Shown: positions 1 to 46,169 of the stretch, in pieces
Layout: each line of letters begins with the position of its first letter
Numbering within the stretch: the first letter of the stretch is position 1
Source: Klebsormidium nitens
Lineage: Eukaryota > Plantae > Klebsormidiophyceae
Assembly (NCBI GenBank): GCA_000708835.1
Contig: DF237597.1
Span: forward strand, 1 to 47,542
DNA: 47,542 nucleotides
Reading direction: 5' to 3'
Translations under genes and position numbers: made by a program
The notes under the pieces: model-generated
What the model saw: the letters and a program-made list of their open reading frames with translations, nothing else
What the model was told of the DNA's origin: nothing
The model's database searches: none

Positions 1-354
1 CCGAATCGCACATCCACGGCCCTCACAGAAACCCCGCCCATCCGACGGCCGAGAGAGTTGGGTGGGAATTGAAGCTCGCGCCGCCCCCCGCTTGGCGCAT
101 GCAGGGCGCAGACAGGCGCCACGTCCTGATGTCCTGCATTGTCTCTTCATCAGAAAACCTTTAACTAGCGGAATTACGTTCTCTGGTGATCTAGAGACTT
201 TCAAGGTTGGGCTTATAGAGTCGGTCAACGTGCCGGCGCCAGCATAAGATCAGATCAGGAACAATATGGCTAGCCATCAAAAGAGCAAGAAGTTAAATCA
301 GCCGCTGCAACGCGTTTATAAATCTTTACCGGTGAGACACTGGAGGAGCTGCAG

Positions 355-18400: not shown

Positions 18401-21400
18401 TGTGAAGTTTCTCTTATGTTCAATCAAGTGCAACACTGGGGGTGGCATATGCCTAGCTCGATCGGCTCGACCCAGACAACCCTAACGGATGCCGTCAAGC
18501 AGAATGAGCATAGTGGAGACCGAAGTGCAACCTATGGAATAAGACGCCCCCTTTTTGGAAGCGCCCATCGCTCGTGGGCTTGATTACTACAGAAGTCGGA
18601 ACACAAGCCCTTAAGACTCTCCTTGGCTACGCTCAGCCTTTGATTTTGACCCTCTATCCCAAAAACTCGCCCCAGGCGCTCACCTGCGGAAGCTCCTCAA
18701 GTGCCACAGCGACTGGATGACGACGTTCAGGAAGCAGTTGTACTGCCCCGTCTCGTTCACCAGCCCCTTGCCCGCAACCGTCTCCTGCAGGCCCGTCTCG
18801 GCGCCAGCTGGCGCGCTGCCATTGGCCGAGGGGGGCGCACGTCCGGGGGGGTACGCGGGGCGGGAGGGAGCGCCTGACGCTTGCAGGGACTGCTGCATCG
18901 CGAGCCGGATGTCGGCCTGGAAGCGCTTGTCGTCCTCCGGGATCGCGCCATCTGGCCGATCCTGTGGCTGGGAGCGAGGGGAAAACAGGTTGTTAGGTTT
19001 TTGTGGGCGGTTCCAAAGGAGATGCAGTGAGCGATACGACTGGCTAGGGGACCACAGGCTCTCCAATCCTGTGAAGGCAAAGCAGACCTGACATAAAACA
19101 AGGCGCTTTGCGAGAACCAGTCTACTAAAAGCCTTAGCAAAGGTAACTTTGCCAGCATCGACTGGGGCCCTTTTTCTAACATCCAGCAGGGGTATTGTCC
19201 AGTAGGACTTCATTCCATCTGTCCACAAGAACGAGTTCAATCTCCACACGAAAGAGGTTCGGAGCGTGCCAGCAGCTTCCAAGCAGTATACTCGGGCCAA
19301 AGAGCAGAACTTTGCGATGGAACTTTCAACCAAAACCAGGCCGAATAGCGCGCTAACAAACAATGAAGCATTTCTAAGGAGCTGCAGCACTCACACGCTC
19401 CCCGTCCTGCCCGCTCCCGTTCACCCGATTATCCGCCGGCAGTCCCGTGCGCAGCGCGGCCGCAAACCCGTTGTCCGGCTTCTGACCACTCGGCAGCAGC
19501 ATGCTCATCAGGTTCGACACGTCGGGCTCCTCCTCCGCTACCCCTGGCAGGCCGCCATTGGCCCGCGCGTCCTGCGCCTCCCACCCGGTCGGCCCGCCGA
19601 GAGACAGTGACGTCATGTCGGCGTCGTTATTCTGGGGCTGGTGCCACTGTGGGGAGCTCCCGTTGCCGTTCGCTTGACCCCCCCGGTACACTTCCGGCGA
19701 GTCGGGGTAGTACGCGGCAGTCCGGCGCTGTGCGAGCGCCGCCTGTTGTTGGTCTTTTAACGAGCGGGGGTTTTGGGGTTTTGGCTGGTTGCCGCGCGAG
19801 CCCGCGACGTGGGACCAGGACGAGGATTTGGAGAGGTCTTCCAGCTGTTGGAACGCGAGGCTGTCCGCTTTTCCGGTGAGGGGGGGGGACGCCGGGGGGG
19901 GGTTGCGGGCGGCGTGCTGATGGTGCTGCGGGTGCTGCACGACGGGGATGCGGGTGGAGTCGTGCCTGCACAACCATTCGGAACAGGGGTTAGGGCAAGG
20001 TATTGGGGTTCAGGGATGGATTTGTAAATCAGGTGTGGGATCTGGGTTCTGGATCTAAAGAGCATGAGAAGAATGAGGCTCATTTGCCGGTCGCGGTTGC
20101 CACCTCAATGCAACTCTTGGAGCTGCATGAGCTGGGAAACCGTCTTGTGCCCCAGCAGGAAACGCAGGCAGGAAGTTCTGCAACGACGTACTAGACAATG
20201 GCGGCCTAAAATCCCTGCAATCGGTTGCCGCGCCATTGCGGGCATCTTAAATCACTTTTAAATAGGCAAGAAGCACCGTCTATTCAAACATGCCTTTGGG
20301 CCTTGACAAGAACTTGCAACAGCATCTGCAATTGATGTCCCTACCTATGAGAGAACAGCTATACAGCGACTCCAACAGCCTGACTTTCGATAAGTTTCAA
20401 GCAGCACCACCCATGATACTTCTTGATTCCTGCCAGCACCCAATTAAACCCCCTTGCCTCTCACCTTTGGCGTGGCCCCTCTCTCATCCCCCCAGTCGTC
20501 ATTGGCCGCCGGCCCTCGTCCGGCCGCCTCTGCTCAGTTTCCGGAGGGCCCGACCGCTTCTCCTCAGATCCCCTGTCATTGTGTGAATGGGCGCCTCGCC
20601 GGCTAGACCCTGCCAGTTCCCACCCTGCATCTGCATCACCGTTCTGCTGCTTGGATCGCCGCTCCGCTTCTTGACGCTCGCTCTCGGCCAGGGCGTGCTT
20701 GAATTGCCGCTGCATGAAGAAGGGCGGCGATTCGGTACTGGCGGATCCCGCAAAAAATGCATCAATTGATCCTGAAAAGAATGCATCAATCGCTAGCCAG
20801 AACCAGAGTCTTTGGCACAACATCTTGGCGCTCCAAACAATGAATCCGCCAAAGTGACTTTTCAACCCGCATTGGAAGTTCTTGGTTCGCACGGTCCTCA
20901 AAGATCCGCAAAATGATTCTTGTTCGTAGGCTTGAGGTTAATGACGACCGGAAGCTTGCAAGGTTCAGACAACCTGGAGTTGGCGAGAGACCTCCTGTAC
21001 AAGTCCCATCAAGTTCCAGTGACTTGACAGGTGGCATGAGCGATTAATGCAGGCCATGAGCTATAAGCTATAAGGCCGATTCAGGAGGCAATTGTTAGCA
21101 GTCACATCAGTAGTTAAGAGTGCTCAGCCTTAAGATGGTATACTGCACCGCACCCAGTCCACTGTCAATTCACGTACAAAGCCCATATCTTGCAAACCGA
21201 CTACAAATTCTGCTTTCATGACATCAAGAAGCATGCGACAAGTCCACAGAAAGCCATGCCAATTTATGAAAAAAGAAAATAAAAACCCGAAACCGCCGCA
21301 TGCTGAGAAAACAGCTCCTTCCAAAATGCAACAGCTCAGAGGAGATCTTGACTAGAGCAAGGGAAATTCAGCGCGCACGGACCTCCTCTTCCTCCTCCCG

Positions 21401-24400
21401 CAAGAGAGCTTCCCGCTCTTGCTGCTCGATCTTTCGGCGTGCTGCAGCGTCCAGGCTCTTGTTCTTCTCTTTCGCCAAGGCTTCCTCCGCCAGACGCTGC
21501 CGCTCCAGATTCGCCGCGAGAAGCCGCTCGTCTTCGTCATCATAAGTCGCCTGCCACAAATATCGACTCCGATTTAGGTTTTCCTATCCAATTTCAATAG
21601 ACTGAAGAACTGGTCGACCGGCACTTGATACTAACAAGCTGTTGAACTAGTGGCCTTCAGAATTGAGGTCAAAGATCCAAGGAAACTGACTTGGCTTTGG
21701 CCGTAAGGCAAAGGCGTCGTCATGATTCGCTTGCAAAAGATGGCCTGGATTGTCATATTTTTACACTAATGACCTAGAAGAATAAGGGACATTGAATAAG
21801 ATGACGTGAAAGAAGCACACAGCGTGACTTTGGCTTTGCCAAAAGGCAACATTATGGGTGATATCAATGTCCGAGGATGACCATTTGAAACTGCCAAGAT
21901 GTGTTTTCTAGCTTTCGCCAAAATACACAAGGTTGTACCATAAGAGGAAAGCCAATCAGGGGCCAAAAGTTGTCGGACAGAGTAGCATAGACTGCACTAA
22001 TCTCGGTGAAGTAGAGTTCGTGGCAATCACCTCTGGTCGTCGAAGCTCGGCCTTTGTCTCCTTGGGGCTGTCTGCCAGCTCTTCCTCGGAGTCCTCGCCC
22101 TCATCGACGTCCCGCTCGGAAAGGGTCGCAGAGGCGACCTTCTGCAAAAAGGACTCGGCGGAATGTTGTTCAGATCGGTTGCTTGAGGGGCACTTCAATC
22201 CATGAAAGGGCTGAGAGACGCAGGTGCTGAGGTCAGCTCCGTCATTCCAGACAAGTAAGGGGCAAAGGGACGCTGCGAAAATGAAGAGCAAAATGCACCG
22301 AGACTAAAACTACGGAATCGCGAAGGTGACTACTAGACGAGCGGAAAGACGAGGCTCCGTTGGAAGAACTTCTATTACGCTACAGAGGTCACTACTGGCT
22401 TCATCGGCCAGGCTTCATCGGCCAAAGAGACGAGTGACCAGGTGTTTTAGATCATACAAAATCCAGTCGAATCATTCCACCAAACTGACTTCAAGAATCC
22501 CAAGCGGAAGACTACTGATTTATGTTGCAAGCAAGGCAGCATACCTTGGTGTCCTTGGACTTTCGCCGGTCCTTCTTCTTGGCGTCCTTTGCCTTGGCCA
22601 CCTTGGCGGGCTCCGCCTTCTTCCCCTCCTTCTCCAGGTCGGACAGGAGCGTCGCCTGCGCCTCGTCCGACTTCCGGATCGCGTCCTCGTCCACGGCCGC
22701 CACCAACTTGTGCTGCAGAGGCCAATCAGCAGGCGTCAGCGACCGGACCAAAGTGACGAGGTTCAGAGTTTTACTGTTCGTTTTTCCGACCTCCCCCGGA
22801 TTTTATGAAATCCAGTTTTTCCAGTTGTCTCCACTCCTTTCGTTGGGCCACCGTCCCCAAAAAGAGATTATGAGCAAGAAATTTGCTCTGAGTGACTGTA
22901 TCCAAGCCAGCGGGTCTCATGTGGAAAAGGAAGTCCGTGACCTTTAAATACCCGCTCTGACTGATCGAGACAAATGAGTCGTCCTGAAACGCACCAAGCA
23001 GCATGCGCAAGTGCGTACAGGAGAGGTCTCTCTTTCGAATTCTCGCTCGGATGGAGCAGAAGACTTTGGCTCGAGCACTAGGCTGGTGCGCCGTCGGAGC
23101 ACAGGCTAGGAAAAGTGGCTTCTAACCTGTATGTGTTGCTTCAGGATGGGGACAATCGCCTGGCGGTAGTCGAACCCGAGGGCCTCTTGGAGGTTAACAT
23201 AACCGAGGGAGATGGCTCGCTGCAGATCCAGGACCCGCTTCTCGATGTTCTCCATCTGCAGACCGAGCATAATTGAACTTGGTCATCTATTTCTAGTCAA
23301 TCAACACCAAAGAGCTTTGGAGACCACCTGGAGGGATTCATTCGGAAACGTATCGGAACGAATCTTTGTGATGACTTTCGCTCAATACTCCAACTTCAGA
23401 CGTTCGACATTTTTGTCGCTTCTCATAGACAGACGCCGACCGAAGATGGGACCAGACAAGCGAAGAAAGGAAGTCGCAGCACTCTCACCCTGGTCTCCAG
23501 CTCTGCGCGCGCGCTGTCGAACGCCGCGCGCACCTTCTTGTTCTTGAACCGCGTCGAGTCGCGCATCCCCAGGATCTCGAACTCGCCCTCGTCCTCCGAC
23601 GAGTCCGGAAGCCCGCGCCCGTTGAGGCGCGCGCGCTGCAAGTGAATCTGCAGCGAGTTGGCCTTGCTCAAAATCATCCGGATCGCCTCCAGGTCCGACT
23701 CGACTTGCCGGCGCTGGTCGCTCTTGTCGGCGCGTCCGGCGAAGGACAGCCGCTCGCGCTGAAGCTCCTCCATGCGGATGCGCAGCACGTTCTGGAACGA
23801 GATCTCGCCGTCGGAGGACGAGGGACTGCTCCGGGGCGTCCGCTGCTCCTCCGCGTTCTTGACCTGCGAGAGAGATCATGTTGCTCTTTGGGGGTTACGG
23901 TGCTTAAGCTCTGATGCGGGAGGAAGCATAGCGTAGCTGGGGAATATTCTTTCGGACAGGCTTGATTTCTAGAAAGGGTTTTGGAGTCGACAGGTTTCCC
24001 CAACTGCTTCATCTTCTTAAAGCTAAGCACACAGCACGGAACCGTGAGACTTTCTTTGAAAACATGTGTCTTGCTTTAGCGGCCTTGACCAGCTAACTCA
24101 GTCCAGGATGGGTCTGAAGTTCCTAAACCGGTGAATGACCTATCCTTGACCTTGAAGCGCTAGGTGCATCTCATATGAAGTCATAATGTGCATGAAGAGC
24201 TCACAACGACAATGGCTGTCCTAGCCATACTAAGGGTTTCAACGTCAACATGTGCCTAAACATTGAGCGTTTAGGGCTCTATCTTCTGACATTTCCGGTT
24301 TCAAAAAGTTCAGATCGTCTACGATAACAGAGTGGATTCTTCGGCTTGTCTAAACCAGACTCGAAATGGCCACTGATTCCGGCATGATACGATTTTCTCA

Positions 24401-27400
24401 CCTCAATCATAATGGCCTGCTCTGCGTTGCGGATCGACGAGTCCTCCACCAGGAGATCCACCTTCTCCTGAAAGCACTTGGTGAGGTCGCGGTGGTGCTT
24501 CCGCAGGTCGTTGTACACTTCGTCCGCCAGCCGCTTCTTGCGGTCCCGGTCGGTCGTCCAGGAGATGGGGACGCTGTCCGACACCTTCTCGTCCACGTCG
24601 AAGATCCATCTGCAGAGGTTGTTGTTGGTTTGACAGCTGTGCGCAACCTTCTCACTTTGTCAAACGCGAGGCAGTGTTCCTTCGGCAACTTCTCATGTGT
24701 TTTCAAAACTGCTGCCTTACAAAGTAATGTATCGTAGACGACATGGGCAGGGTGCCCAAAGAGTATTCATGTGGTCAACTTTTGAGTAAGGAACTGCGGC
24801 TGCTGATCTATGTATGCTTTGCGTTCGACGGATCCCTCTGCGCCAAGATTCACTTTGGAATACAGAAGACTCCAATCTGAAGCCAAGGGTAAAAGACCAC
24901 GTCACCAGAAATACGAAGACATCTCAAGCATGCACTCCGCTAGCTAGCCAGACTTGAGAGTCTACTCGATCCAATACCAGGCCGTACCCTTAAGCTAGCA
25001 CCCTTAGCCTCAGCTTGGTCATGAGATACTTCAGCAAGCTCTTGAAAAGGTACCCGCCAAACCAATCCGCAACCATGAACAGAGCATGCCCTGCCCTGAA
25101 TTCGATACTCTTGAGGAAAGCTTTGAAACCGCGGTTGCACTGAAGATCGCTCGCAGCGTATCTCACCGCAGCTGATCCTCAGGCCCCGGCGGGCTCTGCT
25201 CCACCACCTGCTCCCCTTCTCTTGGCACAATCTCCATTCCTTTCGCGTCATCTTTCCCCTTGCCGCTTTCAGATTCGTCAGCTGTGGACTTCTCCCCCGC
25301 GCCCTCTCCCGAAGCGGTCTCCTCCAACGGCCCAATCAGAGGCTCTTTCTCCATCGCCGAAGCCCCTTTCTCCTCCGCCTCTTCCCCAGCTGAGGGCTCC
25401 TTCAAAATCTCCTCTGCAAGTGCAGCCCCAGGGCCTTCCATCTCCTCTGCGGCCGGGGCCTCCTTCGGCCCCCCCGCGTCCCCCCCCGCTTCCGCCACCG
25501 GCACCCCCTCCGGCAGGAAGGGATCCCCCTTCTTGTACAGCAGCAGGTACATCAGCCGCTTGGACGGGGCGAGAACCTCCTCGCTTTCGGACAGGGTTAT
25601 GTCGAGCGGGACCGGCTCGTCCTCCTCGACATTGTACGTTACCGTCAGCTTGTTATCGCTGCCCTCTCCCAGGATCTCGTCCTCTAGGTATTGCCGCACC
25701 TGGGCGATGCTCTCCTCGTCAACCATGCGTAGCAGGTTCCAGTCGTGCTGCCACTCCACCGACGCGGACGGATCTGCGGGCCAGGCGTCTGCCTCAGTAG
25801 GGGTATCTGAGTGGCAAAACAGAGGATCACAGGAGAGATGCACATCCTAATCTGCTTGTCAAATTCTACTAATCACCCCATCTCCTAACCCTGCAGGTCA
25901 GAAAGCATCAGTACAGGTCTTTCAAAGGGTAAACAGCTCTGTCAGATGCATGAAGCAGCATCCCCCAAAACCAAGCCAATCTGGACATCTGATTCTACGA
26001 TCTTTCAAGCGGTCAATCACTTTAGTAGAAGCATTCGCGAAACAGGGGCCTGATCCAGAGAGCGCCAACTCAGGACACCTTCTCTCTTAGTTGCGCCCTC
26101 TGCAGACCGTAGAACCGTCTGTATGCAGTGTCGCCTGGACGCAACCTTCCAGCCAAAAATCAGAATGATAATCTGTGGACTAACCCGGGAGCAGGCTCTG
26201 CAGGACATCCACGAGGAACTGGAAGATCTTGTGCTGGTGGTTCATGAAGAACAGCTTGTGCTCAATCAGCACGCGCACGAGCCCCAGCAGCTCCCCCAGC
26301 GACTTGGCCCGCTTCTCGTCCTCCACCACTGGAAGCTCTACGTCCTGATTCCCGAGCGAGATCGGGCAGCCGTTTGCCCCATGCGTCGGACAGAAGTGCT
26401 CGCCGATCTCGGGGGGCGGGTTCTCCGAGTCCACAAAGTGCTCCCCCTCCTCGCCTTCCTTCAGCAGCGGCTCAAACTGCTCCCCCGCTTCCTCAAACTG
26501 GCTCTCTGCGGACTGGCCCCCCTCGCTGCCGTCCGCGTCGGCCGCGTTTGGGACGCTCTCGTGCGCGTCGAGAAAAGGGGCCTCGGACGTAGGGCTGTTA
26601 GGGGATAGAGCCGGCTTTGCATCGGGGCCGATGATACGCTTTTGGAGGGCGTCTTCCAGGAGGAGCCGTGCAGCTTCCTTTCCGTCGGTTGGAAGCATCT
26701 TATCAATGTCAAAGTTGGGGGGCAGGTCCACGGGAGAGATGTCGCCCCCCGCGGGGAAAATGAGGTGCTTCTCCTGGACGTGGACCTTGTGCTCGATCCC
26801 CGTCTTGAACTTTGCGCTGCACCTGAAGAGCAAAACCTCAAAGCGTCAATCTCTTTCATGATCAAACCTAAGTGGAGTGAAGGGCGTATAGAATGCCCGT
26901 CCTCTTAAAGCAGATTACAGAGCACAAAAAGTTGCAAACGATTTGGAGGCCATGCTTGTGGTGGTGCTTTTGATGGGGCAATTGAACATTAAGACAGTTG
27001 GAAGAGCTCTTCCCTTTTTATATGCATTGTATCAAAGGAGATCTGACAGCAGGCATGCGCCAAAAGACGGGTACACAAAATCATACCAAAACAAAGAAAC
27101 AAACACTGTGTTCACCTTGTTGAACACCAGCGCAATATGAAAAGTGGCAGAGGCATTAGAATCAGGCGATTGTGAAAAGATTGATAGAAGCACGTAACCA
27201 CCACCCTCATCGGGGGTTTTCCTGACACATTTAGGCGTAGTTTGTGACTGCTTATTGAAGGCAGAATGAGCATATGACACCAAAACCAACTTTTGTGTAT
27301 ATCTAGGATCTGTGTCTACCTAAAGTGGTACGGACCCCAAAATAGAAATTAATTGGTCTACGCTCTTCCATCAAAGCAGAAAACTTACTATCAAATACGA

Positions 27401-29081
27401 ACTGAGCACACCACCATGCAACGACCATGCATCAGAAGATTCTAAAGAGGTCTGAAAAGCACTCTTCACTTTTTCACCATCACGTAACAAGAAGGTACCT
27501 CGAACAGTGTGCTGATATACTCTCTCCAATGGTTGGTAAAGGTTGCATGGCAGCGGAAAAATCCTACCATCGCTGCCGAAGCCTGCTAAAGTTTGCCAAT
27601 GACCTTTTACCCAAACCTTCAAAGACAGCAGCTAACTTTTCTCATTGTATCAGATCTTTTGAAACCCATGCCCAACCATGAGCAACTAAACCCATTCGAA
27701 ACAAGGACATAGAAAGTCAACAATGTGGCTGCACTCACTTGTGGCAGAGCCAGTACTTCCACACTTGATTCTCCTTGTAGAACTCGAGCGCCTCCTCCAG
27801 CACGCTGCTCGACTCGGCACTCCTGCTCGACTTGAGCCGCTGCGCCAACTCGCTGACAGGCACCTGTAGCAGCTGCTCCCGCTGCTCCGAGACCGCAGTC
27901 TCCCAGAACGGCTGCACCTTCTTCATCTTCTCATCCGCCCCATTCTTCTGGCCCTTGCTTTTGGCCCCCCGCTTCTTCTCCCCCCCCTTGCCGCCCCGCT
28001 GCTGTTCTCGCTCCTCCACCTCTCCCGCCTCTGCCGCCTCCTTAGCCCCCTTCCGCTTCTCCTGCGCCTCCTTCTGATGCATCAGCAGCCGCGTCGCCTC
28101 CAGCTGCGCCTCAATCTGCTTCCGCCGTTCCGCCTCCGTCTTGGTGCTCTTTTTCACCTCGTTCGCTCGTTTTGGCTGCAGGATGCGCTGCTCCAGGTCC
28201 TTGTCATTGCTCTGCAATTGCCGCATCAGCGGGACGAAGTTGCCCTCGCTGTCCACGCTCACGTGCTTGAAGACATGCTGCAGCCCCGACAGCTTCATCT
28301 GATGCGACAGCTGCCGCAGCTGGTGCTTGAAGTGGCCAATCCTCATCTCAGTGGTCTTCAGCTCTTCAGGCAGTTCTCCCAGCATGTCCCTTGCCGGATC
28401 CCTGGGCTCCACAATGCCCAGCGCACGCTCGCATTCCGCTATGGCCTGCGCATTCTCCTCCCCATCGACGTACTCTTGCAGCAACATCGCATAAAAGAAG
28501 GCGTGCTCTACCGAGTTGGGGCTCAGTGTGGTCGCCAGCTTCGCAGCCTCGAGCGCTGTCTTGATGTGCTGCTTCTTCAGCTTGCTCGCATCATTCTGCT
28601 GCTCCGCGAGCCGCTTCTCTATGTAGGCATGATACCTGAACCCCAGGGAGATGGTGGGATGCTTCTGGCATGTCTCCTTGATTGCTTTCTGAGCCCTCTG
28701 CGGATTGTTTTTCATTGTCTTCACCGCCTTCTCGCATTCTGTCCGCACAGTGTCATCCTCGCTGGGGCCAGCGACCTTGGGTTTGGTTGCTTTGGCAGGC
28801 ACAATGGCTTTGCCCTTCCCGGACGACCCAGCCTTTGTCAACTTCTTATCCTTCTCCTTGTCAGGTTTTCGGTCCTTCTCCTTCTCTTTCTCCTTGTCCT
28901 TGTCCTTGTGTTTGTCTTTTTCCTTCTTCTTTTTTGCTTTCCCGGTGCCATTCTGTTCAGACTGCATTGCGCCGGACTTCCCAGACAAACCCAGCAATTG
29001 CTGCTCCTCGGCGGGTTCAGAAACCTCAGAGGCATCTTCCCCTCCATTTGATGAGGCTCTGCTTCCCACCTCCTCCGCCAT
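15415..29081 (-). CDS. Ubiquitin carboxyl-terminal hydrolase-related protein (DUF627 + C2H2-like finger/DUF629 + USP53/54-type UCH domain), about 1935 aa
   Basis: 17 exons: 27739-29081, 26185-26822, 25167-25806, 24402-24609, 23489-23863, 23127-23255, 22545-22712, 22031-22141, 21383-21550, 20465-20709, 19395-19965, 18684-18967, 18044-18233, 17363-17641, 16735-16882, 15924-16144, 15415-15504. Phases are consistent, total 5808 nt; an alternative ATG at 29108 adds 9 aa. Motifs: LSPNSVEHAFFYA, WKYWLCHKCSAKF..H..H...H, FDYRQAIVPILK, GLVNETGQYNCFLNVVIQSLWHL, HVGHPCVVCAL, GQMNDASEVL, CDPDIGGC, VCYYGQHYHCFAY, WVMFDD, GHLQPQVLFYE. These match the Arabidopsis At3g47890-type family as I recall it. Confidence 0.95.
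15762..15815 (-). repeat. Decayed copy of the UCH exon 16 3' end plus donor site, inside intron 16
   Basis: Minus strand caaccaggagcttgctaggtcatgttcgacgatacgccgtcaag|gtgaggc versus true caaccaggagctcgcgcgctgggtcatgttcgacgacaccaccgtcaag|gtgaggc. Confidence 0.85.
15860..15892. repeat. 11-bp tandem repeat (cttgacaccaa)x3
   Basis: Three exact adjacent copies. Confidence 0.9.
16981..17270 (-). repeat. Cluster of decayed splice-junction copies in UCH intron 14 (two acceptor+exon 15 copies, one exon 14+donor copy)
   Basis: 16981-17045 is a near-exact copy of the branch point, AG and start of exon 15. 17101-17146 is a more diverged copy. 17199-17270 is a copy of the exon 14 end plus gtgggttt. Confidence 0.85.
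17847..17870 (-). repeat. Short copy of the UCH exon 14 start behind an AG in intron 13
   Basis: cttcgag|ggccagatgaacgacgc versus true ccccag|ggccaaatgaacgacgc (16/17 identical). Confidence 0.65.
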
Positions 29082-29456
29082 GTCGGCAGTCTCACGTATT
29101 TGTACCATCCTTCTGTCACACACTCCTAGTGCATGTCAACCAAACAAACCTTCTGAGCATGCGGTTTGGCCATGTTATTTCCCTTCAAAGGTCCCCAGAA
29201 CTTCTCTTCTACGCCACCCTGAACTCCTTGCTAAGGAATGAGCCCCTCATGGTCGCCTGGTAATGACATGGCTGAGCGCCATGATCGTCACTGCTCTGAC
29301 TCTTTGAAGTTGAAGTTCGAGTCTGGGTGTCGCAGTCGAAATGTCGTCTTCCACAAATTTTTTCTAGCTTTGTAACTGGGCAATACGCCCCTATATTAAG
29401 TGCCTTGCGGGCTAATATGTATCTTCAAAAGCTGGCATCAGTCCACAAAATGGGTA

Positions 29457-38815: not shown

Positions 38816-41800
38816 CTAGCCGAAGCACCCACAGGACGCCTTCTTTTTTCGCGCGCCACCGACAGTTTCTTTCACCGCCGCGGCTTTGGTGCGAACCCTG
38901 GCCAACGTCACCTGCAGAGAAATGGCAGGCGCTTTAACCGGGTGGTTCCGCCTACGTCACCATTTCGTTCACTCAGCGGCGAGTGTTCCACGGCAATTGT
39001 GTAATTCCTGTCGATGAGCAGTTGCGGGCTCGAAAGCGACAGTTGACGCTATTGATCGCCACTCACTTTTGGCTGACAAGTCCCGCCACTGAACTGAGCC
39101 ATCCGGCGATTACGCGTGTTCGAACATACCCGTTTAACAAAAGGAGTGTTCGGATGCAATCGCGAGCGGTTCGTGCTTTGACTGCATTGCAAAGGTGTCC
39201 AGAAGGGCGCTGAGACGGTAACGGGTGTAAAGCGTCCGATTGGCGGTTGACGCATGAACACGTTTTGATGGATATTTGGCTGCAACTCAGAGCCAAAACG
39301 GTAGGCTCGCAGCAGTGATCGTTATTTGGAGAAGCTTTAGGACAGGCGAGTAAGACGATAGTCTTGAAACAGCCAGGACGTGGCAGATCATCAGGGCAGG
39401 TGTGGCAGAACTTCAAATGCAACACGGAATGACAAGGACTAGGATAACTCTGCAACCAACTGTTGGCCTCTACATAAGCGGATGTTAGGATGCTGCAAGC
39501 CTACCTCGGAGTGATCGTTGCACAAAGAAGAGACAACTGCACGGTACGAAGGAATCGAGGAGGCAGCGCTTACCTCCACGTCCTTGAGCGACTCCGTGCC
39601 CGGTTCAACAACCCCAGGACCTTGCTTCTCCATACCAAACTGCACCAAGAGTGGAACGGAAGAGTTGATAACGACGACGGGATCTAAAGCTGTCCCGTTG
39701 ACAAAACCGATTGAAAAGATGGTCAGAAATGTAGCATTCGTCGGGCATGCCGGAAGACCTCTCGTTTCTTGGCCCGAAAAAGTCATTTGCATCTCCCTTT
39801 GATTTCCATTTATCCTCCCTTAATCTCCTTTTGACTTTCGTCGTACGCATCTCCTCTGAAAGGCGCACTCAGAATGCTAAAAGCGGTGCTGATTGAAAGA
39901 CTGGGTAAAGAACCGATCATTGCGTGTTTCAGTGGCTTGACGATTAATCTACTTTGTATTCTTAATTACAGCCAAGCGACAGGAAAAATTCGCTTCGCAT
40001 CTCCTTCGGGGCCGATTGTCGACGTATCTTGTCTGTTATTGCATCCACGCGCGTAAAAGTAGCAATCGAATCTAGGCAACGGTGGAATCCGACGAGACCT
40101 TTCTGCAGTACGCAAGTTGAAAACAAGACAGGATATTTCAACCGAGAGTCGATTCGAATCCTACCTCCGTGCCTGCTTCTACGGAAGCGGCGGGAGCCTT
40201 CGCCTGGATATTTTTGTCTTCCTCCTCGTGCTGTCCGTTCATGAGGGGAGCGGTTTTGCCTGGCAAGGGGACAGGCGAGTCTGAATTGCATATGAGTAAC
40301 TCTATACTGTAATAAGAGGAGTTTGTTTTCTGATACACAAACGCCGGGCATCTCAACTACGGTCCGTAACCCGAATATCACGCGCTTCGCACCTGCACCC
40401 AACCTAAGCATCAGACTAACCCCACCCGTTCCCCCGGTGCTTACCGTTAAACAGTCGGCCCTTGAAACATACAAGTCCAGAGTTGCGGCGTCAGAGACCT
40501 TTTTGAGTGTCCTTATGTGCAGGCGGGTGTAGAGTATCGGGTCAAAAAAAAAAGGCCAGAGTTTCAATGCAGTTCAAGGGAGCGTTCGGAGAGACAGCTT
40601 GGAAAGAGCGTACACTTCGAAAGAAACTGGGAAAAATCAAAATTCAAGGTTTAGGGATATCTTGGAAAGTCATTTAAAAACGTCGCAAAGAAAGATGGGA
40701 AATGGTTGAGGCACCTTCGAAAGAAGTAGTCGAAGCGACTCAGGAATGTGGAACCACGAGACCCCAAGGGCACATCGCTTTTCTTCCAAGAGGGACACGT
40801 TGAAGAGGGTATAGTTTAGGTACATGCAACACAATATAGACCTTTGCTTGCCGCCTGCTTCGCGTATCAGATAGCCGGTGAGAGGCCTTTCCGAGCTCCC
40901 GAAGAGTAAAGAAACACGTGATCCACGTACCCGAGTCTCCAGACATACACGAAAAGATCCAACGGGCGAAAAGGTAAAGAAGGGCTAAGGTTAAGTAAAT
41001 GTTTTAAAGGTAAGAAAGTGATGCGAACAGGTGTAAGCAAATTACGGAATGTATCTATGTTTGAAGTTCGCCACTTCGTCCTAAAGTGCCCAACGTTACC
41101 ACCATAATGTGCTCACCTGTCGTGCTGGGCACTTCGTCTATGGGAGGCAATAACCCCACGTAAGAGAACGCGTGCTCATACTTGGCCGGGGGGTCGCTGG
41201 CTGCCTCCTTCTTCAGGTACTGACCCCCCTGGTACGAAAACGCGTGCTCGTACTTGGCTGCGGGGGGGCTGCTCGGGGTGCCTTTCTTCAGGAACTGCCC
41301 CCCCTGGTACGAAAACGCGTGCTCGTATTTGGCGGCAGGGGGAGAACTAGCCGCTTCCTTCTTCAGATATTGACCCCCCTGGTAAGAAAACGCGTGTTCG
41401 TACTTCGCCGCGGGGGGGCTGCTCGCTGCCTTGTCCTTGAGGTATTGCCCCCCCTGATACGAAAACGCGTGCTCGTACTTCGCCGCGGGGGGGCTGCTCG
41501 CTGCCTTCTCCTTTAGGTATTGACCCCCTTGGTACGAAAAGGCGTGCTCGTACTTTGCCGCGGGGGGGCTGCTCGCTGCCTTGTCCTTGAGGTATTGCCC
41601 CCCCTGGTACGAAAAGGCGTGCTCATACTTGCTCGGAGTGGGAGTGTTGGCCTCCGCTACAGTAACTCCCGCCGCTGCCGCTTGGCCGCGAAACGACCCC
41701 CCCACGTATGAGAAGGCGTCGGCGTATGGCTTCGCTTCCGGCTTCTTGGCGGGAAAAGACTGCCGTCCAACATACGAGAACGCATGTTCGTAGCGAGAAC

Positions 41801-44800
41801 CCACTCCCCCGTCCGTCGCTGACGTCACGGAGGCCTCCGGCGCGACCTTTGCTGACTTCAGGTACTGCCCCCCCACGTACGAAAAGGCTTCGTCGTATTT
41901 CCGGGTTGCGCTCGGCCGGGGGTCCGCTTTGTGCAGGAACTGGCCCCCCTGGTACGAGAAAGCGTGCTCGTATTTGTTAGCAGGGGGGGGGCTGGGCTCG
42001 GCTTTTTTCTGGAACTGACCCCCCTGGTACGAGAACGCGTGCTCGTATCTGCTTGAGGGGGAAGGGCTGGACTCCACTTTCTTCAGGAACTGACCCCCCT
42101 GGTACGAGAATGCGTGCTCGTACTTACTTGTGGGGAAAGGGCTGAGCTTGGCTTTCTGCAGGAACTGGCCCCCCTGATACGAAAACGCGTGTTCGTATTT
42201 GCTGGCAGGGGGTGGGCTGGACTCGGTTTTCTGCAGGAACTGGCCCCCCTGATACGAAAACGCGTGCTCGTATTTGCTGGCAGGGGGTGGGCTGGACTCC
42301 GCTTTCTTCAGAAACTGACCCCCCTGGTACGAAAAAGCGTGCTCGTACTTGCTGGCAGGGGGAGGGCTAGACTGCGCTTTCGTCAGGAATTGGCCCCCCT
42401 GGTACGAGAACGCGTGCTCGTTCTTTTTTGGGGGGTCCGCCGCTACGCTTCCGGTCGCCTCCGGCCTCAGCCCCTGAACCCCCTGGTACGAAAACGCGTC
42501 CTTATATCTTTCCCCTGGATCCGCTCCCCCCTCCGAGGTTGCCTTCAAATGCTGCCCCCCAACGTACGAAAACGCGTCCGCATACTTGCTGGGGGGGACA
42601 GCCTCGCTCTTCTTCGGTTGCAAGTACCCCCCCCCGACGTAAGAAAAGGCGTGCTCGTACTTGCTCGCTGCGGCGGGGGGGCTCGTCTTGGGCGGAAGAT
42701 ACCCCCCTCCGACGTACGAAAACGCGTCCGCGTACTTGGCCGCGGGAGGGGCGTCGCTCGTCTTTGCTGGCAAGTACCCCCCTCCGACGTACGAGAAGTC
42801 GTGCTCGTACTTGGGGGGGGCAGGAATCTCCGTTAGGTGCTGCCCCCCAACGTAGGAAAAGGCGTCCTTGTAGCGGTCGGCTTCGCTGGGGGATGCCTGT
42901 TGAGCACAGGGAGGGAAATTGCAGAAGGATTGCAAAACGGAGAAGGTCGCTGCAAGTAGCCGTCACTTAAAGCAGAGTGTGAAGCGGCTGAGAACGAGCA
43001 TCCCGAACATACGATCTGAGACTGAAAGGTGGAAGCAAATAAGAACAGAATTAAACAGACCGTTGGGCTACGGTATAAGAGAAGGGGAGAAAAAAGATAC
43101 ATTCCCAGAAATAAAACACGTACAGAGCTTATGAAGGTAATTGAGACGTGGAACTCTCGGTGAAAGTAAAAAGAATATCTTTGCAATCCCAAAAAGTCGA
43201 CCCTGAAGCCTGCCAGCGCCTGACTTTACTTACGACCATTGGGGGCGGATGCTGTTAAGTCAAAAAGAGCAAAAGATGCGGCAGAGAAGGATAAGAAAAG
43301 CCGCTCTCGCTTCCTGTGGTGCAACGAAAGAACTAAGGTAAATGAAACGTCCGTCATTTTGAAGTACTGCATTTCGACTTCCCTACAGCAGATGTTGGAA
43401 AACTTCGAGGCAAGAAGGGGACGGAACGGGAAGACTGCTCAAGTAACGACAAGGGACGGTTGCTGCTGTATCCAAGTGCGCGGCAAGCCAAAGCTTGGAG
43501 TGAACATGCCAGGGTACTCTCCTCGTTTGACAACCTTCACCAGGAATCTTGATTATGTGTGATTACTGGTGGCTTCTCTGTGATCGAAATACATCTGTAT
43601 GCAGTTTTCCAAGCGAGCATGACAGAATGCGGTTCCTTTGAGCATGGAAATGGTTGCAAAAGAACGTTTTCCAGAAAACGATTTCATGAGCAGCGACACA
43701 CTTCAATAGCACTGCATGAAAAACTCTCAAGATGGCTTCGCAGGTGACCAGGCCCGGTGGCCGTGCATCCGCTCGCATATTCCAGTCTCTTTGAATGGTC
43801 TACAACATTTTCCAGCGACTGTTCTTAGAGATCCGTACCTCAAGACACGAGCTGCAACGTGGCTGGTGGACGGAAGCATCGCACTTTGAGTTGACAAATA
43901 AAGAAGGAAGGTAAAAGATCAACAATCGAAAGGACTTAGGTTCTATGAGAATGCTGATTCACCTCAGGGCTCCCGCCGCCAGTGCTGGGTGCGAGACCGT
44001 CCACCGACGACATGCTGTGGGAAAAGCACAGGCAATGAGAAAGTGGCCTCCACAACCTTTGTCAGATTGTTCGTTCTCCCTCAGACCCCACAACCAAGGG
44101 TCCCTTTCTTAACCACTCCTTTGGCAATCGAACCTTCAAACCCCAACTTTAAGGGGTTTCTTTCATTTAGTTGCACTCTCTGGCATTTGTCTGGTGAGGA
44201 AAGGCAGGCAATAAGGAACGAGGATTTGAGATCGGGGCTTATGAGGGTCAACAACAGGGTAGTTGCGACTCACACAACGAGGAAAATAATGCTCAAAGAA
44301 GGTAACCAAAACGACAAGCTTCGGATGGTCATGCGGTCTGCCTCTGCGACCTTCCCCTGACCTGTATGTGGTGCTTATCAAGTGCGAAGCGCTCAGATAC
44401 TCAAGTAGACAAATATTCGACAATCTGCTCTGAGCCAAATCTTTTATTAACAGCTGACAACTTTTGGAATAATGTTCAAAGGGTTCAAGGAAGATAGATT
44501 CAGTTCAATGAAGACAGGATCTTGTCTGTATGCAGGTCAAAACCTCAAGTGTATGTGGACGCTGTTGGCTTCTTTTAACCTGCTTCATATCACCTGATTC
44601 AGAACATTCCAAAAGGTTGCTTCTTGCAATGCAATGCAGCTGCAATTAAAGGTGTCAAAACTTGAGAGGAGTCCTCCTTACCTGCTTACACTTGCAATGT
44701 CCATTACTGACTTTGGGCTTGGAGGGGCGTCAATCGGCGTCAAGCCCTGCATTGATTGCGTGAAGTCAGGCGCCCTTCTTGCAGCATATACAGGCTATAG

Positions 44801-45354
44801 GAGGAGGCTTTGAATAGAGACCATTGGGTGATTCCAGACACAGAAAATCGATAGAGCGTTGGAGGTTGCGAATAGATCTTCACACTGGATGAATCTTGAG
44901 AGAGAGTAACCAGGAATGCACCATCAACCCGTAGGGCTGTCTCTGCGTCGATTGCAGGTTGTATCAAGAATGCTGCCACTTATCTGGAAATATTTCTGAA
45001 AGGGTATGAACGTTTTCCGGCACATAGAGAAAGTTTGTCTGCGCTCAGAAGCAAAGAGCAAAGGCAGAGCATCTCTTTTAGCGAGCCTTTCACATGGGAG
45101 TGCGCTTTGCCCTCTTCCCACCCCCTCAGGAACTTTCTTTATATACAAATACAGGATGCATCTGGCTACCTTCTAGAAGATTCAGAAGGTCAGAACGAAA
45201 TGCTTTCTTTTTGATCAAGCAATGCCAGGGTCTACAATATCCGTAACAGCGGGGTGCTAAATTTCACCTTTGAGTCGCCTTGTGCTGCGGTGGGGGCTAT
45301 GGCAGTCGGGCCTCCCTTGACCTTTCTGCTCAGTATCTTCTTGAATGACTTCAT
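38816..45354 (-). CDS. Uncharacterised low-complexity repeat protein (23 x KYEHAFSY[Q/V]GGQ), polybasic N-terminus, C-terminal KKKASCGCFG, 752 aa
   Basis: Exons: 45268-45354, 44682-44746, 43963-44014, 43234-43251, 41117-42896, 40165-40259, 39574-39639, 38816-38911. All are GT-AG, phases match, total 2259 nt; an in-frame stop precedes the ATG. Reads MKSFKKILSRKVKGG...GDSK|GLTPIDAPPSPKSVMDIASVSS|MSSVDGLAPSTGGGSPE|HPPPMV|ASPSEADRY...PSTTG|KTAPLMNG...GTE|FGMEK...KDVE|VTLARV...ARKKKASCGCFG*. The small flanking exons are less certain than the 1780-nt repeat exon. Confidence 0.82.
40346..40443 (+). mobile_element. Dispersed repeat copy B (in an intron of the repeat-protein gene), homologous to 5305-5403
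   Basis: gggcatctcaactac...atcacgcgcttcgcacctgcaccc...ccccacccgttcccccggtgctta aligns nearly ungapped with copy A; the terminal CTAG is lost. Confidence 0.5.
41155..42876 (-). repeat. Coding tandem repeat, 23 units, mostly 75 nt (25 aa) period
   Basis: Units counted in the translation; plus-strand core ccctggtacgaaaacgcgtgctcgtactt recurs with synonymous variants. Confidence 0.97.
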
Positions 45355-46169
45355 CTCTTCAGCTTGGCTTTGCTTCAATTCCGGTTCTCAAGACAGTTTG
45401 CAGCTCAAACCCTCCGTGAGACTCCAGACCTTCCAGCTGGTCAGTTATCTGCTCACAAGACTTGACACTCTGCTGAACTCAGACTGCAGCAGCTAACTAT
45501 AGAACAAGAATCTTCTTGCGCCTCCAAACCCTTGCGTTGCCTTCTGCAAGGAGATGGTTCTCATCCTTCGACCATGCGATCAGCCTTCACAGAGGAGGTC
45601 CTTTGCTGTTGATCCGAGTAGCCAACTGGTTAATCCTGTTTCTCCTGGCTCCTCAATCCCACGTACTAGGTCCAAACGATAGCAGGTCGACTTTGCGCTG
45701 CGCCGCTGATGCAATAAAGTCTGTAACAAGACACCAGCCGCCGACTCTGAGTCTGAGGCTCGAACCTTCTGAGCAGATGGGTCCTTTTTGCACCGTAGAA
45801 CAAAACAAACGGCGCTTTCCACAAGCTGATCTACGGTATCTTGGATCAGCAGCCTTGGGCTTCAGCTGTTTCAACATTTGGTGGTACCACGAACTTGAAC
45901 TTGAAGTTGGGATTTGAAGGGGGCCATTTTGGAAGGCACTGGGCAGCTAAAAATCTCAAAAAGGCCGGTCGGCCAATCACCACGTGCACCACGGGGCAAA
46001 AAGCTAGTATCATATCCGAGTCGGCGTCAGGGCCAGTTCTCGCGCGCGGGGACATGAGCGCACTGCGCAGCAGACCAAAGTTGCCATTGGCATCATCATG
46101 GCGTCAGCGGGAAAATTTTGCACTTCGCAGACTCGTGCGAGCAGTGCAGCAAAACGGACTCACAAACAA

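Follow-up and report, generated by a model that had tools for sequence, protein, structure and literature searches.

The minus strand of a 47,542-nucleotide stretch of Klebsormidium nitens DNA (contig DF237597.1, hereafter the window) raises the question of whether a long and highly repetitive reading frame belongs to a real gene and, if so, what a chain of 23 near-identical aromatic motifs might do. A preliminary description, drawn from the letters alone, had read it as a sticker-and-spacer protein encoded by 8 exons and suggested a disordered scaffold.

The gene and its transcript

The gene is real, spliced and transcribed, and encodes a basic protein of 746 residues without a signal peptide or a membrane span. 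Three runs from a single study (X1-X3) supplied RNA-type contigs that define a coding span at 38816..45354 (minus strand) with 7 exons and 2241 nt (746 codons plus the stop), in place of the 8 exons and 752 residues first proposed. These spliced contigs, together with per-exon translation, in which the phase is continuous through all exons, back both the ATG at 45354 and the stop at 38816-38818; the introns are all GT-AG on the minus strand. Both ends of the coding span lie where the preliminary description had put them, as do the borders of the repeat exon at 41117 and 42896. A transcript of that exon, on which the description had made its case depend, is present among the spliced contigs, with zero mismatches across most of the exon length. 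The last exon was placed by following the contigs to 39572, where their loose end reads into 38911 and downward. Upstream of the ATG there is an in-frame stop (45388-45390), and the contigs reach at least 521 nt 5' of the coding part of exon 1, into a 5'UTR or a neighbour. The exons, all on the minus strand, are as follows.

45268..45354, minus strand: coding part of exon 1 (29 aa), starting MKSFKKILSRKVK (contigs and translation)
44682..44746, minus strand: exon 2 (65 nt), a Ser/Pro/Asp-rich linker (joints 44745/45267 and 44014/44682)
43963..44014, minus strand: exon 3 (52 nt), a Ser/Gly-rich linker (joints 44014/44682 and 42895/43962)
41117..42896, minus strand: exon 4, the repeat exon, 1780 nt (593 codons plus 1 nt; contigs and translation)
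40165..40259, minus strand: exon 5 (95 nt), acidic, charge -3 (contigs and translation)
39574..39639, minus strand: exon 6 (66 nt), acidic, charge -3 (contigs and translation)
38816..38911, minus strand: coding part of exon 7, 31 aa plus the stop, basic, charge +6.7 (contigs and translation)

An 18-nt candidate micro-exon flanked by GT-AG (43234-43251, minus strand), probably the eighth exon of the earlier model, is not in the transcript seen; it is unused, since the contigs leave exactly 117 nt (65 + 52) between exons 4 and 1. The plus-strand open reading frames that cross the repeat are mirror images, and were rejected because the splice sites match the minus strand only. The transcript is well assembled in only 3 of 24 runs from the same species, all 3 from one study, an uneven presence that may stem from strain differences or from the assembly of repeats.

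The repeat array and selection on its cores

The 23 aromatic-core units announced for this region are indeed there: the open reading frame at 41055-42935 (minus strand, 626 aa) has 23 matches to the pattern [YN][EAKD][HDE][AD]FSY[QV]G. When the 47.5-kb window is translated in six frames, all 23 occurrences of the shorter pattern [AD]FSY[QV]G fall within this single frame. The core reads [KR]-Y-E-H-A-F-S-Y-[QV]-G-G-Q-[FY]-L and is followed by a Pro/Ser/Ala/Lys spacer. The array makes up four fifths of the protein and can be divided into blocks.

41154..42875, minus strand: the whole array of 23 units, each a 14-residue core and a spacer of about 11 residues (motif scan)
42426..42875, minus strand: block A, units 1-6, the most diverged, with cores mostly of the types ..AFSYVGGGYL and ..VGGQHL
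41901..42425, minus strand: block B, units 7-13, of the type KYEHAFSYQGGQFL followed by KKAESSPPPAS, each exactly 25 aa
41631..41900, minus strand: units 14-16, irregular at 35, 22 and 33 aa and carrying an insert rich in Ala, Gly and Val
41154..41630, minus strand: block C, units 17-23, of the type KYEHAFSYQGGQYL followed by KDKAASSPPAA

Units are 25 aa long in 15 of the 22 intervals, the others measuring 21, 22, 24, 26, 28, 33 or 35 aa, and Tandem Repeats Finder reports three 75-nt arrays with matches of 82-84%, 84% and 73%. The product of exon 4 has a pI of 9.0, a net charge of +12.5 and a GRAVY of -0.8. Alanine (14%), serine (12%), proline and glycine (10% each), tyrosine and lysine (9% each) dominate the composition; each spacer has three prolines, and aliphatic residues are scarce in the chain.

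For dN/dS, we compared the 15 units of exactly 25 aa. The units are old copies, and the synonymous differences between them are near saturation (pS 0.62). The dN/dS ratio is 0.07 in the core and falls to 0.012 in AFSY.GG, against 0.51 in the spacer; in units 17-21, the pN of the core is 0.012 versus a pS of 0.63. Although synonymous changes are numerous, the F, S, Y and G of the core are the same in all 23 units. Of the two glycines, G10 never varies and G11 is present in 20 of the 23 units; seven positions of the 14-residue core are near-invariant, and the conserved strand shows an alternating pattern in the per-position table. These results show that the core is under strong purifying selection, and that the spacer drifts in sequence with its length held. 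The sticker-and-spacer layout proposed initially is supported, and the cores matter (0.07 vs 0.51 for the spacers). The accompanying view of a protein of almost entirely low complexity fits its composition but not its core, which is a specific, selected motif.

Predicted fold and searches for relatives

Structure predictions differ with the input. When seven units were modelled with a pseudo-alignment, AlphaFold returned disorder (pLDDT 33.6) without secondary structure. Given the whole of exon 4 as a single sequence, it arranged each unit as strand-GG-strand-loop in a low-confidence stack of beta-hairpins (mean pLDDT 48.2, pTM 0.45, 348 of 593 residues with pLDDT < 50), with the highest confidence in units 7-13 of block B (pLDDT 55-78). 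Neither the seven-unit nor the whole-exon model contains a helix. The folds nearest to the whole-exon model are parallel beta-helices or solenoids and curli CsgA, with Z of 8-12 (maximum 11.8), a range that repeats can attain through arrangement alone. The structure atlas gives TM of 0.51-0.54, again with beta-helices nearest to the hairpin stack, and Foldseek found no match to this model at E <= 1. Single-sequence AlphaFold runs can over-structure perfect repeats. Since AlphaFold stacks the hairpin stickers like a solenoid, at low confidence, a disordered scaffold is not a settled label for this protein.

In line with the preliminary description, which recognised no family, we found no relative by sequence. 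Pfam gave no match at E <= 10 for exon 4, nor any for exons 1, 2, 5, 6 and 7 searched separately. The PDB had no meaningful match by sequence or by profile, and word-indexed searches with queries of 626, 211 and 100 residues retrieved no relative. An exhaustive HMMER search of 1.84 billion representative proteins produced 86 matches. The seven that we inspected are unrelated periodic proteins (Kelch, WD40, ankyrin and kinase-linked repeats), and the remaining ones are taken to be of the same kind. The matched Kelch proteins themselves score 1e-60 to 1e-73 with Kelch profiles. Scans of metagenomes and prokaryote genomes with the patterns KYEH[AD]FSY and KY[EA][HD]AFSY gave no confirmed relative, and a literature search for the core motif found no mention of it. 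The ESM Atlas offered a single weak look-alike for the 211-residue query and none for the whole of exon 4. An exact look-up of one fragment of the protein, of the size of an RNA contig, returned no record. The status of orphan is provisional, because the collections searched also lack this protein's own fragments.

Several known systems share features with the array. Kelch and WD40 blades are the only look-alikes by sequence, with E-values inflated by the summing of one weak match across many repeats. The Kelch repeat shows a similar succession of SPPA-loop, aromatic strand, G-rich turn and strand, with two units per blade at 22% identity and 20% gaps, and the core resembles the AFSxDGxxL hairpin of WD40. 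However, Kelch and WD40 blades have four strands in 42-50 residues and an aliphatic core, whereas the units here have two strands in 25 residues. Membership in either family was rejected: the period is wrong (a four-stranded Kelch blade takes about 44-56 residues) and no Pfam profile matches (Kelch at E <= 10). Beta-solenoids, such as curli CsgA, pectate-lyase-type beta-helices and autotransporter passengers, have a similar layout: they are built of strand-turn-strand rungs of about 20-25 residues with turn glycines and ladders of identical residues. The low-confidence AlphaFold model aligns with them at Z 8-12, and the array shares their constant rung length (15 of 22 intervals) and their conserved turn and ladder positions. 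There is no sequence relation to them, however, and the present chain is far more hydrophilic and rich in proline; the named solenoid proteins are also secreted, while this one lacks a signal peptide.

The FUS segments SYSGYS, SYSSYGQS and STGGYG form reversible kinked beta-sheets and hydrogels, and the core F-S-Y-Q-G-G-Q-[FY] shares their make-up of aromatic residues with Ser, Gly and Gln. In contrast to the degenerate and irregularly spaced FUS-type domains, the motif here has 14 residues, a fixed 25-residue period and proline-rich spacers, and the protein has no RNA-binding domain. The nearest protein-language-model cluster is the staphylocoagulase repeat (PF04022), at 0.80, which is below the level of relatedness. 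The 27-residue repeat of staphylocoagulase forms a disordered tandem array that binds its partner unit by unit. The likeness lies in tandem units of about 25-27 residues without a fold of their own, but staphylocoagulase is a secreted bacterial protein, and our protein has no Pfam match to PF04022.

Possible membrane attachment and possible roles of the array

Both termini of the protein are basic (+5.5 and +6.7) and the inner flanks are acidic. The N-terminus encoded by exon 1 has no acidic residue among its first 26, which are basic and hydroxylated, and would be amphipathic if helical (moment 0.57-0.59). Exon 1 has no hydrophobic segment, the best 9-residue hydropathy at the RNA-supported N-terminus being 0.79, and the search for a signal peptide or membrane span found none (highest 19-residue hydropathy 0.64). 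At the other end lies a distinctive tail:

38819..38851, minus strand: C-terminal tail RKKKASCGCFG, polybasic, then two Cys and a Phe (sequence)

We regard this tail as a candidate S-acylated membrane anchor, and together with the basic termini it points to a membrane rather than to the plastid stroma. The preliminary description had overlooked both the basic termini and the tail. In remorin anchors, lysines binding anionic lipids occur together with C-terminal cysteines that are acylated. The likeness to the remorin anchor REM-CA and other polybasic, S-acylated plant anchors, an unstructured C-terminus with lysines just before Cys and a terminal Phe, extends over some 11 residues and is a visual judgement; a long, proline-rich N-terminal part, disordered in remorins, is a further point in common. 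Membership of the remorin family was rejected, as Pfam finds no Remorin_C (PF03763) in exon 4 or in exons 5-7. The tail departs from canonical lipidation boxes. The N-terminus could alternatively be an organelle presequence, in which case the membrane-tethering step described below would fail.

Our preferred reading, to which we give a probability of roughly 0.4, is a multivalent array of beta-hairpin stickers that is probably tethered to a membrane. Each core would be a sticker prone to form a beta-hairpin. Along its first strand, K-Y-E-H-A-F-S-Y-Q, residues would point in turn to an aromatic side (Y, H, F, Y) and to a small or polar one (K, E, A, S, Q), before a G-G turn and a short second strand, Q-[FY]-L. 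Pairing or stacking among the 23 stickers, both inside one chain and from chain to chain, may then give a rod resembling a solenoid or a reversible network of cross-beta type (a gel or a condensate); instead of stacking on themselves, they might line up along a partner that is itself repetitive. The polybasic, Cys-containing tail, probably S-acylated, would hold the assembly at the cytosolic face of a membrane, perhaps with help from the basic amphipathic N-terminus. A very hydrophilic and proline-rich chain with few aliphatic residues would be an unusual core for a solenoid, which speaks against a hairpin array, and the conservation of both strand faces together with the small A and S would be no less expected if the cores docked on a folded partner. 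The disorder returned for seven units counts against the array as well.

The same observations can be read in other ways. The array could be a stably folded, monomeric rod, a beta-solenoid or hairpin stack with one 25-residue rung per unit and a length of about 11 nm for 23 rungs, serving as a structural spacer or flat binding surface rather than as a disordered chain. In favour of such a rod are the period, kept at precisely 25 residues in 15 of the 22 intervals although synonymous divergence is saturated and the spacer sequence drifts, the conserved GG turn, the alternating strand and the similarity of the whole-exon model to beta-helices (TM 0.51-0.54). We nevertheless find it unlikely, given a mean pLDDT of 48 with 348 of 593 residues below 50, the disorder of the seven-unit run, the hydrophilic, proline-rich sequence with few aliphatic core residues, and three irregular units (21-35 aa) that would interrupt a regular solenoid. 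Improbable to a greater degree is a reader of a polymer lattice, in which the 25-residue units would each engage a single subunit of a cytoskeletal polymer (cortical microtubules or actin, for example) and the membrane-type tail would tie the polymer to the plasma membrane, in the manner of tau-type or nebulin-type repeats. A repeat length fixed under selection, conservation on both faces of the core, a net charge suited to acidic polymer surfaces, the anchor-like tail and the weak language-model likeness (0.80) to the unit-by-unit binding repeat of staphylocoagulase are in line with it. However, neither Pfam nor the PDB shows similarity to known microtubule- or actin-binding repeats, and matching a period to a lattice is numerology without a structure. 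We rate just as low a stress-protective disordered protein with a function like that of LEA or CAHS proteins, which would gel or vitrify on water loss without a specific partner. The host alga is terrestrial and desiccation-tolerant, the chain is hydrophilic, repeat-rich and disordered in one AlphaFold run, its stickers resemble gel-forming aromatic kinked segments, and good assembly of the transcript in 3 of 24 runs could reflect conditional expression, if not strain differences or repeat assembly. Yet no LEA or dehydrin model matches in Pfam (E <= 10), and strictness at seven core positions across 23 old copies exceeds what bulk physical chemistry usually needs.

The preliminary description had cited EPYC1 and a list of partners, both of them conjectural. 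A linker of the EPYC1 type would be imported into the plastid and cross-link Rubisco holoenzymes into the pyrenoid matrix through its 23 stickers. The alga possesses a pyrenoid. Like EPYC1 of Chlamydomonas and CsLinker of Chlorella, the protein is basic (pI 9.0) and built of repeats with short conserved stickers and flexible spacers, and those linkers are lineage-restricted, without sequence conservation between clades. The FLIPPer screen for linkers expects binding elements 20-120 residues apart, a window that includes the 25-residue period here; it also looks for repeating helical elements, whereas these cores are modelled as beta-hairpins, and for a largely disordered chain, on which the seven-unit and whole-exon models disagree. 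The acid-free, basic and hydroxylated first 26 residues recall organelle presequences. EPYC1 and CsLinker, however, carry a plastid transit peptide and bind Rubisco through helical elements in 5-6 repeats, each about 60 residues long, while the present protein has 23 units of 25 residues with spacers of about 11, a beta-type core, no predicted helix and no sequence similarity to them. Its acidic flanks and lipidation-type tail would be out of place in a stromal linker, and in most runs the transcript does not stand out, itself weak evidence. We therefore hold this role to be very improbable. Hardly credible is a wall protein, secreted and either hydroxyproline-rich or adhesive, whose Tyr/Lys-rich cores would serve in cross-linking. 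The SSPPPA spacers of block B and the Tyr/Lys/Pro/Ser-rich composition recall extensins and adhesive proteins, but SPPP occurs in only a few block B spacers, most being SSPPAA rather than SP3-5, and the YXY cross-link motif, which we sought in the repeat, is absent. The extensin or secreted adhesive assignment was rejected for want of a signal peptide: the N-terminus that the RNA supports lacks a hydrophobic signal sequence, and the ATG is preceded by an in-frame stop.

If the cores of the preferred hairpin-sticker array do drive assembly or multivalent binding, the protein would be a clean natural sticker-and-spacer system: its 23 stickers are nearly identical, the length of its spacers is fixed, and it carries its own record of selection, since the peptides of old copies have stayed identical although their synonymous sites are saturated. 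It would then be a convenient model of how valency and spacing tune condensates, gels and solenoids. Were it only a lineage-specific filler protein, its value would lie mainly in the corrected gene model and a new repeat family entry. One may speculate further, at distinctly longer odds than for the array itself, on an undescribed protein family of streptophyte algae in which a lipid-anchored chain of 23 stickers zips up, on the cytosolic side of the plasma membrane, into a reversible layer of cross-beta or solenoid-like character. Such a layer could be a membrane skeleton or a tether from cortex to cytoskeleton, possibly switched by water loss, with a remorin-type anchor predating the remorins of land plants. 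The host alga is an early-diverging, desiccation-tolerant relative of land plants, and a membrane-tethered protein of this kind would inform the origin of remorin-like cortical scaffolds.

Gene model and transcription

The gene at 38816-45354 on the minus strand is real and expressed. It encodes a basic, non-secreted protein in which 23 cores under selection recur at a fixed period, and for which we detected no relatives. Assembled contigs of three sequencing runs from one study cover the locus, with five internal joints that read CT..AC on the plus strand and thus GT..AG on the minus strand. A loose contig end at 39572 continues directly into 38911 and downward. Since the contigs are spliced, we took these runs (X1-X3) to be RNA, the run type being guessed. 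A second study contributed one further run with parts of exon 4.

Exons of the repeat gene
E1, at least 45399 to 45268, minus strand, with the ATG at 45354
E2, 44746-44682, minus strand
E3, 44014-43963, minus strand
E4, 42896-41117, minus strand, the repeat exon
E5, 40259-40165, minus strand
E6, 39639-39574, minus strand
E7, 38911 to the stop codon at 38818-38816, minus strand

When each exon is translated separately in phase, the frame is unbroken over 2241 coding nt (746 codons and the stop). The start codon is the ATG at 45354, because an in-frame stop lies at 45388-45390. The preliminary description had both ends of the gene right (start at 45354, stop at 38816). It took a missing transcript of the 41117-42896 exon as grounds for refutation; this exon is present in the spliced contigs with GT..AG borders. 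However, its 8 exons and 752 aa give way to 7 exons and 746 aa. The extra exon and residues would come from an 18-nt candidate micro-exon at 43234-43251 (minus strand), flanked by AG/GT, which would insert six residues in frame between exons 3 and 4. The contigs do not use it, since the gap between exons 4 and 1 is exactly 117 nt (65 + 52); it is perhaps an alternative exon, or one that is not used.

Most of the repeat exon is present in just 3 of 24 runs labelled as the same species, all three from one study. In four runs of a second study 12-19% of its words are present, and five studies contribute at least 13 runs that have almost none. This uneven presence may stem from conditional expression or strain divergence, or from repeats being poorly assembled. 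The contigs with exon 1 extend at least 521 nt upstream (45400 to ~45920). This extension represents a long 5'UTR that could accommodate upstream ORFs, or else read-through of a neighbouring transcript. Short RNA contigs at 41418-41505, over the repeats of units 17-23, show 2-3 mismatches at 41448-41475, most likely neighbouring units placed on the wrong copy rather than editing or alleles.

The repeat array and selection on its units

The ORF at 41055-42935 (minus strand, 626 aa) has 23 cores fitting [YN][EAKD][HDE][AD]FSY[QV]G. The unit consensus is [KR]-Y-E-H-A-F-S-Y-[QV]-G-G-Q-[FY]-L, followed by a Lys/Pro/Ser/Ala spacer. Units are spaced by 25 residues in 15 of the 22 intervals (the other seven are 21, 22, 24, 26, 28, 33 and 35), in agreement with the 23 copies and 25-aa period proposed earlier. 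Tandem Repeats Finder delimits three 75-nt arrays in the repeat exon, which match three blocks of units.

Blocks of the repeat exon
Units 1-6, minus strand, VGGGYL-type cores
Units 7-13, minus strand, QGGQFL cores, SSPPPAS spacer
Units 17-23, minus strand, QGGQYL cores, SSPPAA spacer

In the six-frame translation of the whole window, [AD]FSY[QV]G has 23 matches in the repeat frame and none outside it. The GC content of the repeat region is 0.60, against 0.46-0.50 around it. Several long plus-strand ORFs lie over the repeat exon (41172-42970), e.g. 42114-42836 (240 aa). We rejected them as genes: every splice site fits the minus strand only, so these ORFs mirror the repeat.

We compared pairwise the 15 units of exactly 25 residues. 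They are nearly saturated for synonymous differences (pS 0.62), hence the copies are old. The dN/dS is 0.07 in the 14-residue core, 0.012 in A-F-S-Y-x-G-G and 0.51 in the spacer. The core peptides of units 17-21 are nearly identical (pN 0.012), whereas their codons are at pS 0.63. All 23 units share the same F, S, Y and first G, even though 60-120 synonymous pair differences fall on these codons. Selection acts on the cores; spacer length seems to be selected too, since the sequence drifts while the length is held.

Relatives and predicted fold

The preliminary description recognised no family, and our searches concur. Exon-by-exon searches of Pfam, PDB sequences and PDB profiles gave no relatives, nor did word-indexed protein searches identify any for the repeat among candidates of 55-1095 residues. 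HMMER, run exhaustively against 1.84 billion representatives, returned 86 matches (18-39% identity). The seven that we inspected or scanned with Pfam were bacterial Kelch propellers, a WD40-like protein, an ankyrin-type repeat and kinase-linked repeats, and we read the remaining ones as the same sort of periodic match. BLASTP against a Kelch protein places two units onto one blade (22% identity, 20% gaps); we rejected homology, as such an alignment is a loop-strand-turn-strand pattern summed over many repeats. Core-pattern scans of metagenomes and prokaryote genomes gave no confirmed relative. The ESM Atlas gave a single weak look-alike, the 27-residue repeat of staphylocoagulase (0.80), and a further query gave none. 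The core motif strings are absent from the literature searched. The protein itself and all its fragments are absent from the protein collection searched, which orthologues present only in algal transcriptomes would escape too. We regard the repeat as a new family of a known kind, that of multivalent sticker-and-spacer or solenoid-type repeat proteins.

Seven units, modelled with a pseudo-alignment built from segments of the protein itself, are predicted to be fully disordered (pLDDT 33.6). The whole exon 4 as a single sequence gave a mean pLDDT of 48.2 and a pTM of 0.45, with 69 residues at pLDDT 70-90, chiefly in units 7-13. Every unit is modelled as a strand (A-S-K-Y-E-H-A-F-S-Y-Q), G-G, a strand (Q-F-L-K-K-A) and a loop (E-S-S-P-P-P). 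The aromatic face of the core strand (Y, H, F, Y) alternates with a small or polar one (K, E, A, S, Q), as expected of an amphipathic beta-strand. Foldseek gave no matches to this model at E <= 1, and its weak rows are mostly tailspikes and pectate-lyase-type beta-helices. The top ranks of VIA-align are mainly parallel beta-helices and solenoids, including a SufBD-like chain (Z 11.8, rmsd 4.9 over 213 residues), pectate lyases, autotransporters, an antifreeze beta-helix and curli CsgA (Z 8.4), although repeats attain such Z values through arrangement alone. The core chemistry resembles that of the aromatic kinked segments of FUS, which are reversible gel formers.

Termini, possible roles and a neighbouring gene

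Exon 1 starts with MKSFKKILSRKVK and is basic (+5.5). Its N-terminus is amphipathic (helical moment 0.57-0.59), lacks acidic residues in positions 1-26, and may just as well be a presequence for an organelle. Exons 2-3 and 5-6 are acidic linkers rich in Ser/Pro/Gly/Glu. Exon 7 is basic again (+6.7); its C-terminal residues, RKKKASCGCFG, have, judged by eye, the same ingredients as plant polybasic, S-acylated anchors. Remorin anchors have an unstructured C-terminus with lysines that bind anionic lipids, often with acylated cysteines and a conserved Phe; the Remorin_C domain is absent from the exons scanned with Pfam.

We tentatively favour a self-stacking, membrane-tethered array (probability around 0.4). 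The cores would act as beta-hairpin stickers that stack on one another into either a solenoid-like rod or a gel or condensate of cross-beta type, and the C-terminal tail would tether the chain to a membrane. Alternatively, the stickers might dock onto a repeating partner. A stably folded solenoid rod, the arrangement common among the VIA-align top ranks, is rather unlikely, with the seven-unit model disordered. We consider a binder of a cytoskeletal lattice improbable, and a stress protectant acting without a partner just as much so. The sticker-and-spacer layout of the preliminary description holds and its interpretation is supported in part, but its example, the Rubisco linker EPYC1, is slightly less plausible still: sticker spacing is within the range expected of a linker and the basic pI agrees, but helical elements are missing, the spacers are very short, and the flanks and tail would be out of place in the stroma. 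No signal peptide or membrane span was found in the protein (top 19-residue hydropathy 0.64), and a secreted wall protein is very improbable.

Elsewhere in the window, a large USP/UCH-type ubiquitin hydrolase gene occupies ~18600-29150 (minus strand). Its ORF at 18680-19390 terminates in the Cys-box-like GLVNETGQYNCFLNVVIQSLWHL, and the one at 27735-29123, which has a strong AT skew, forms a Lys/Glu-rich N-terminal exon.
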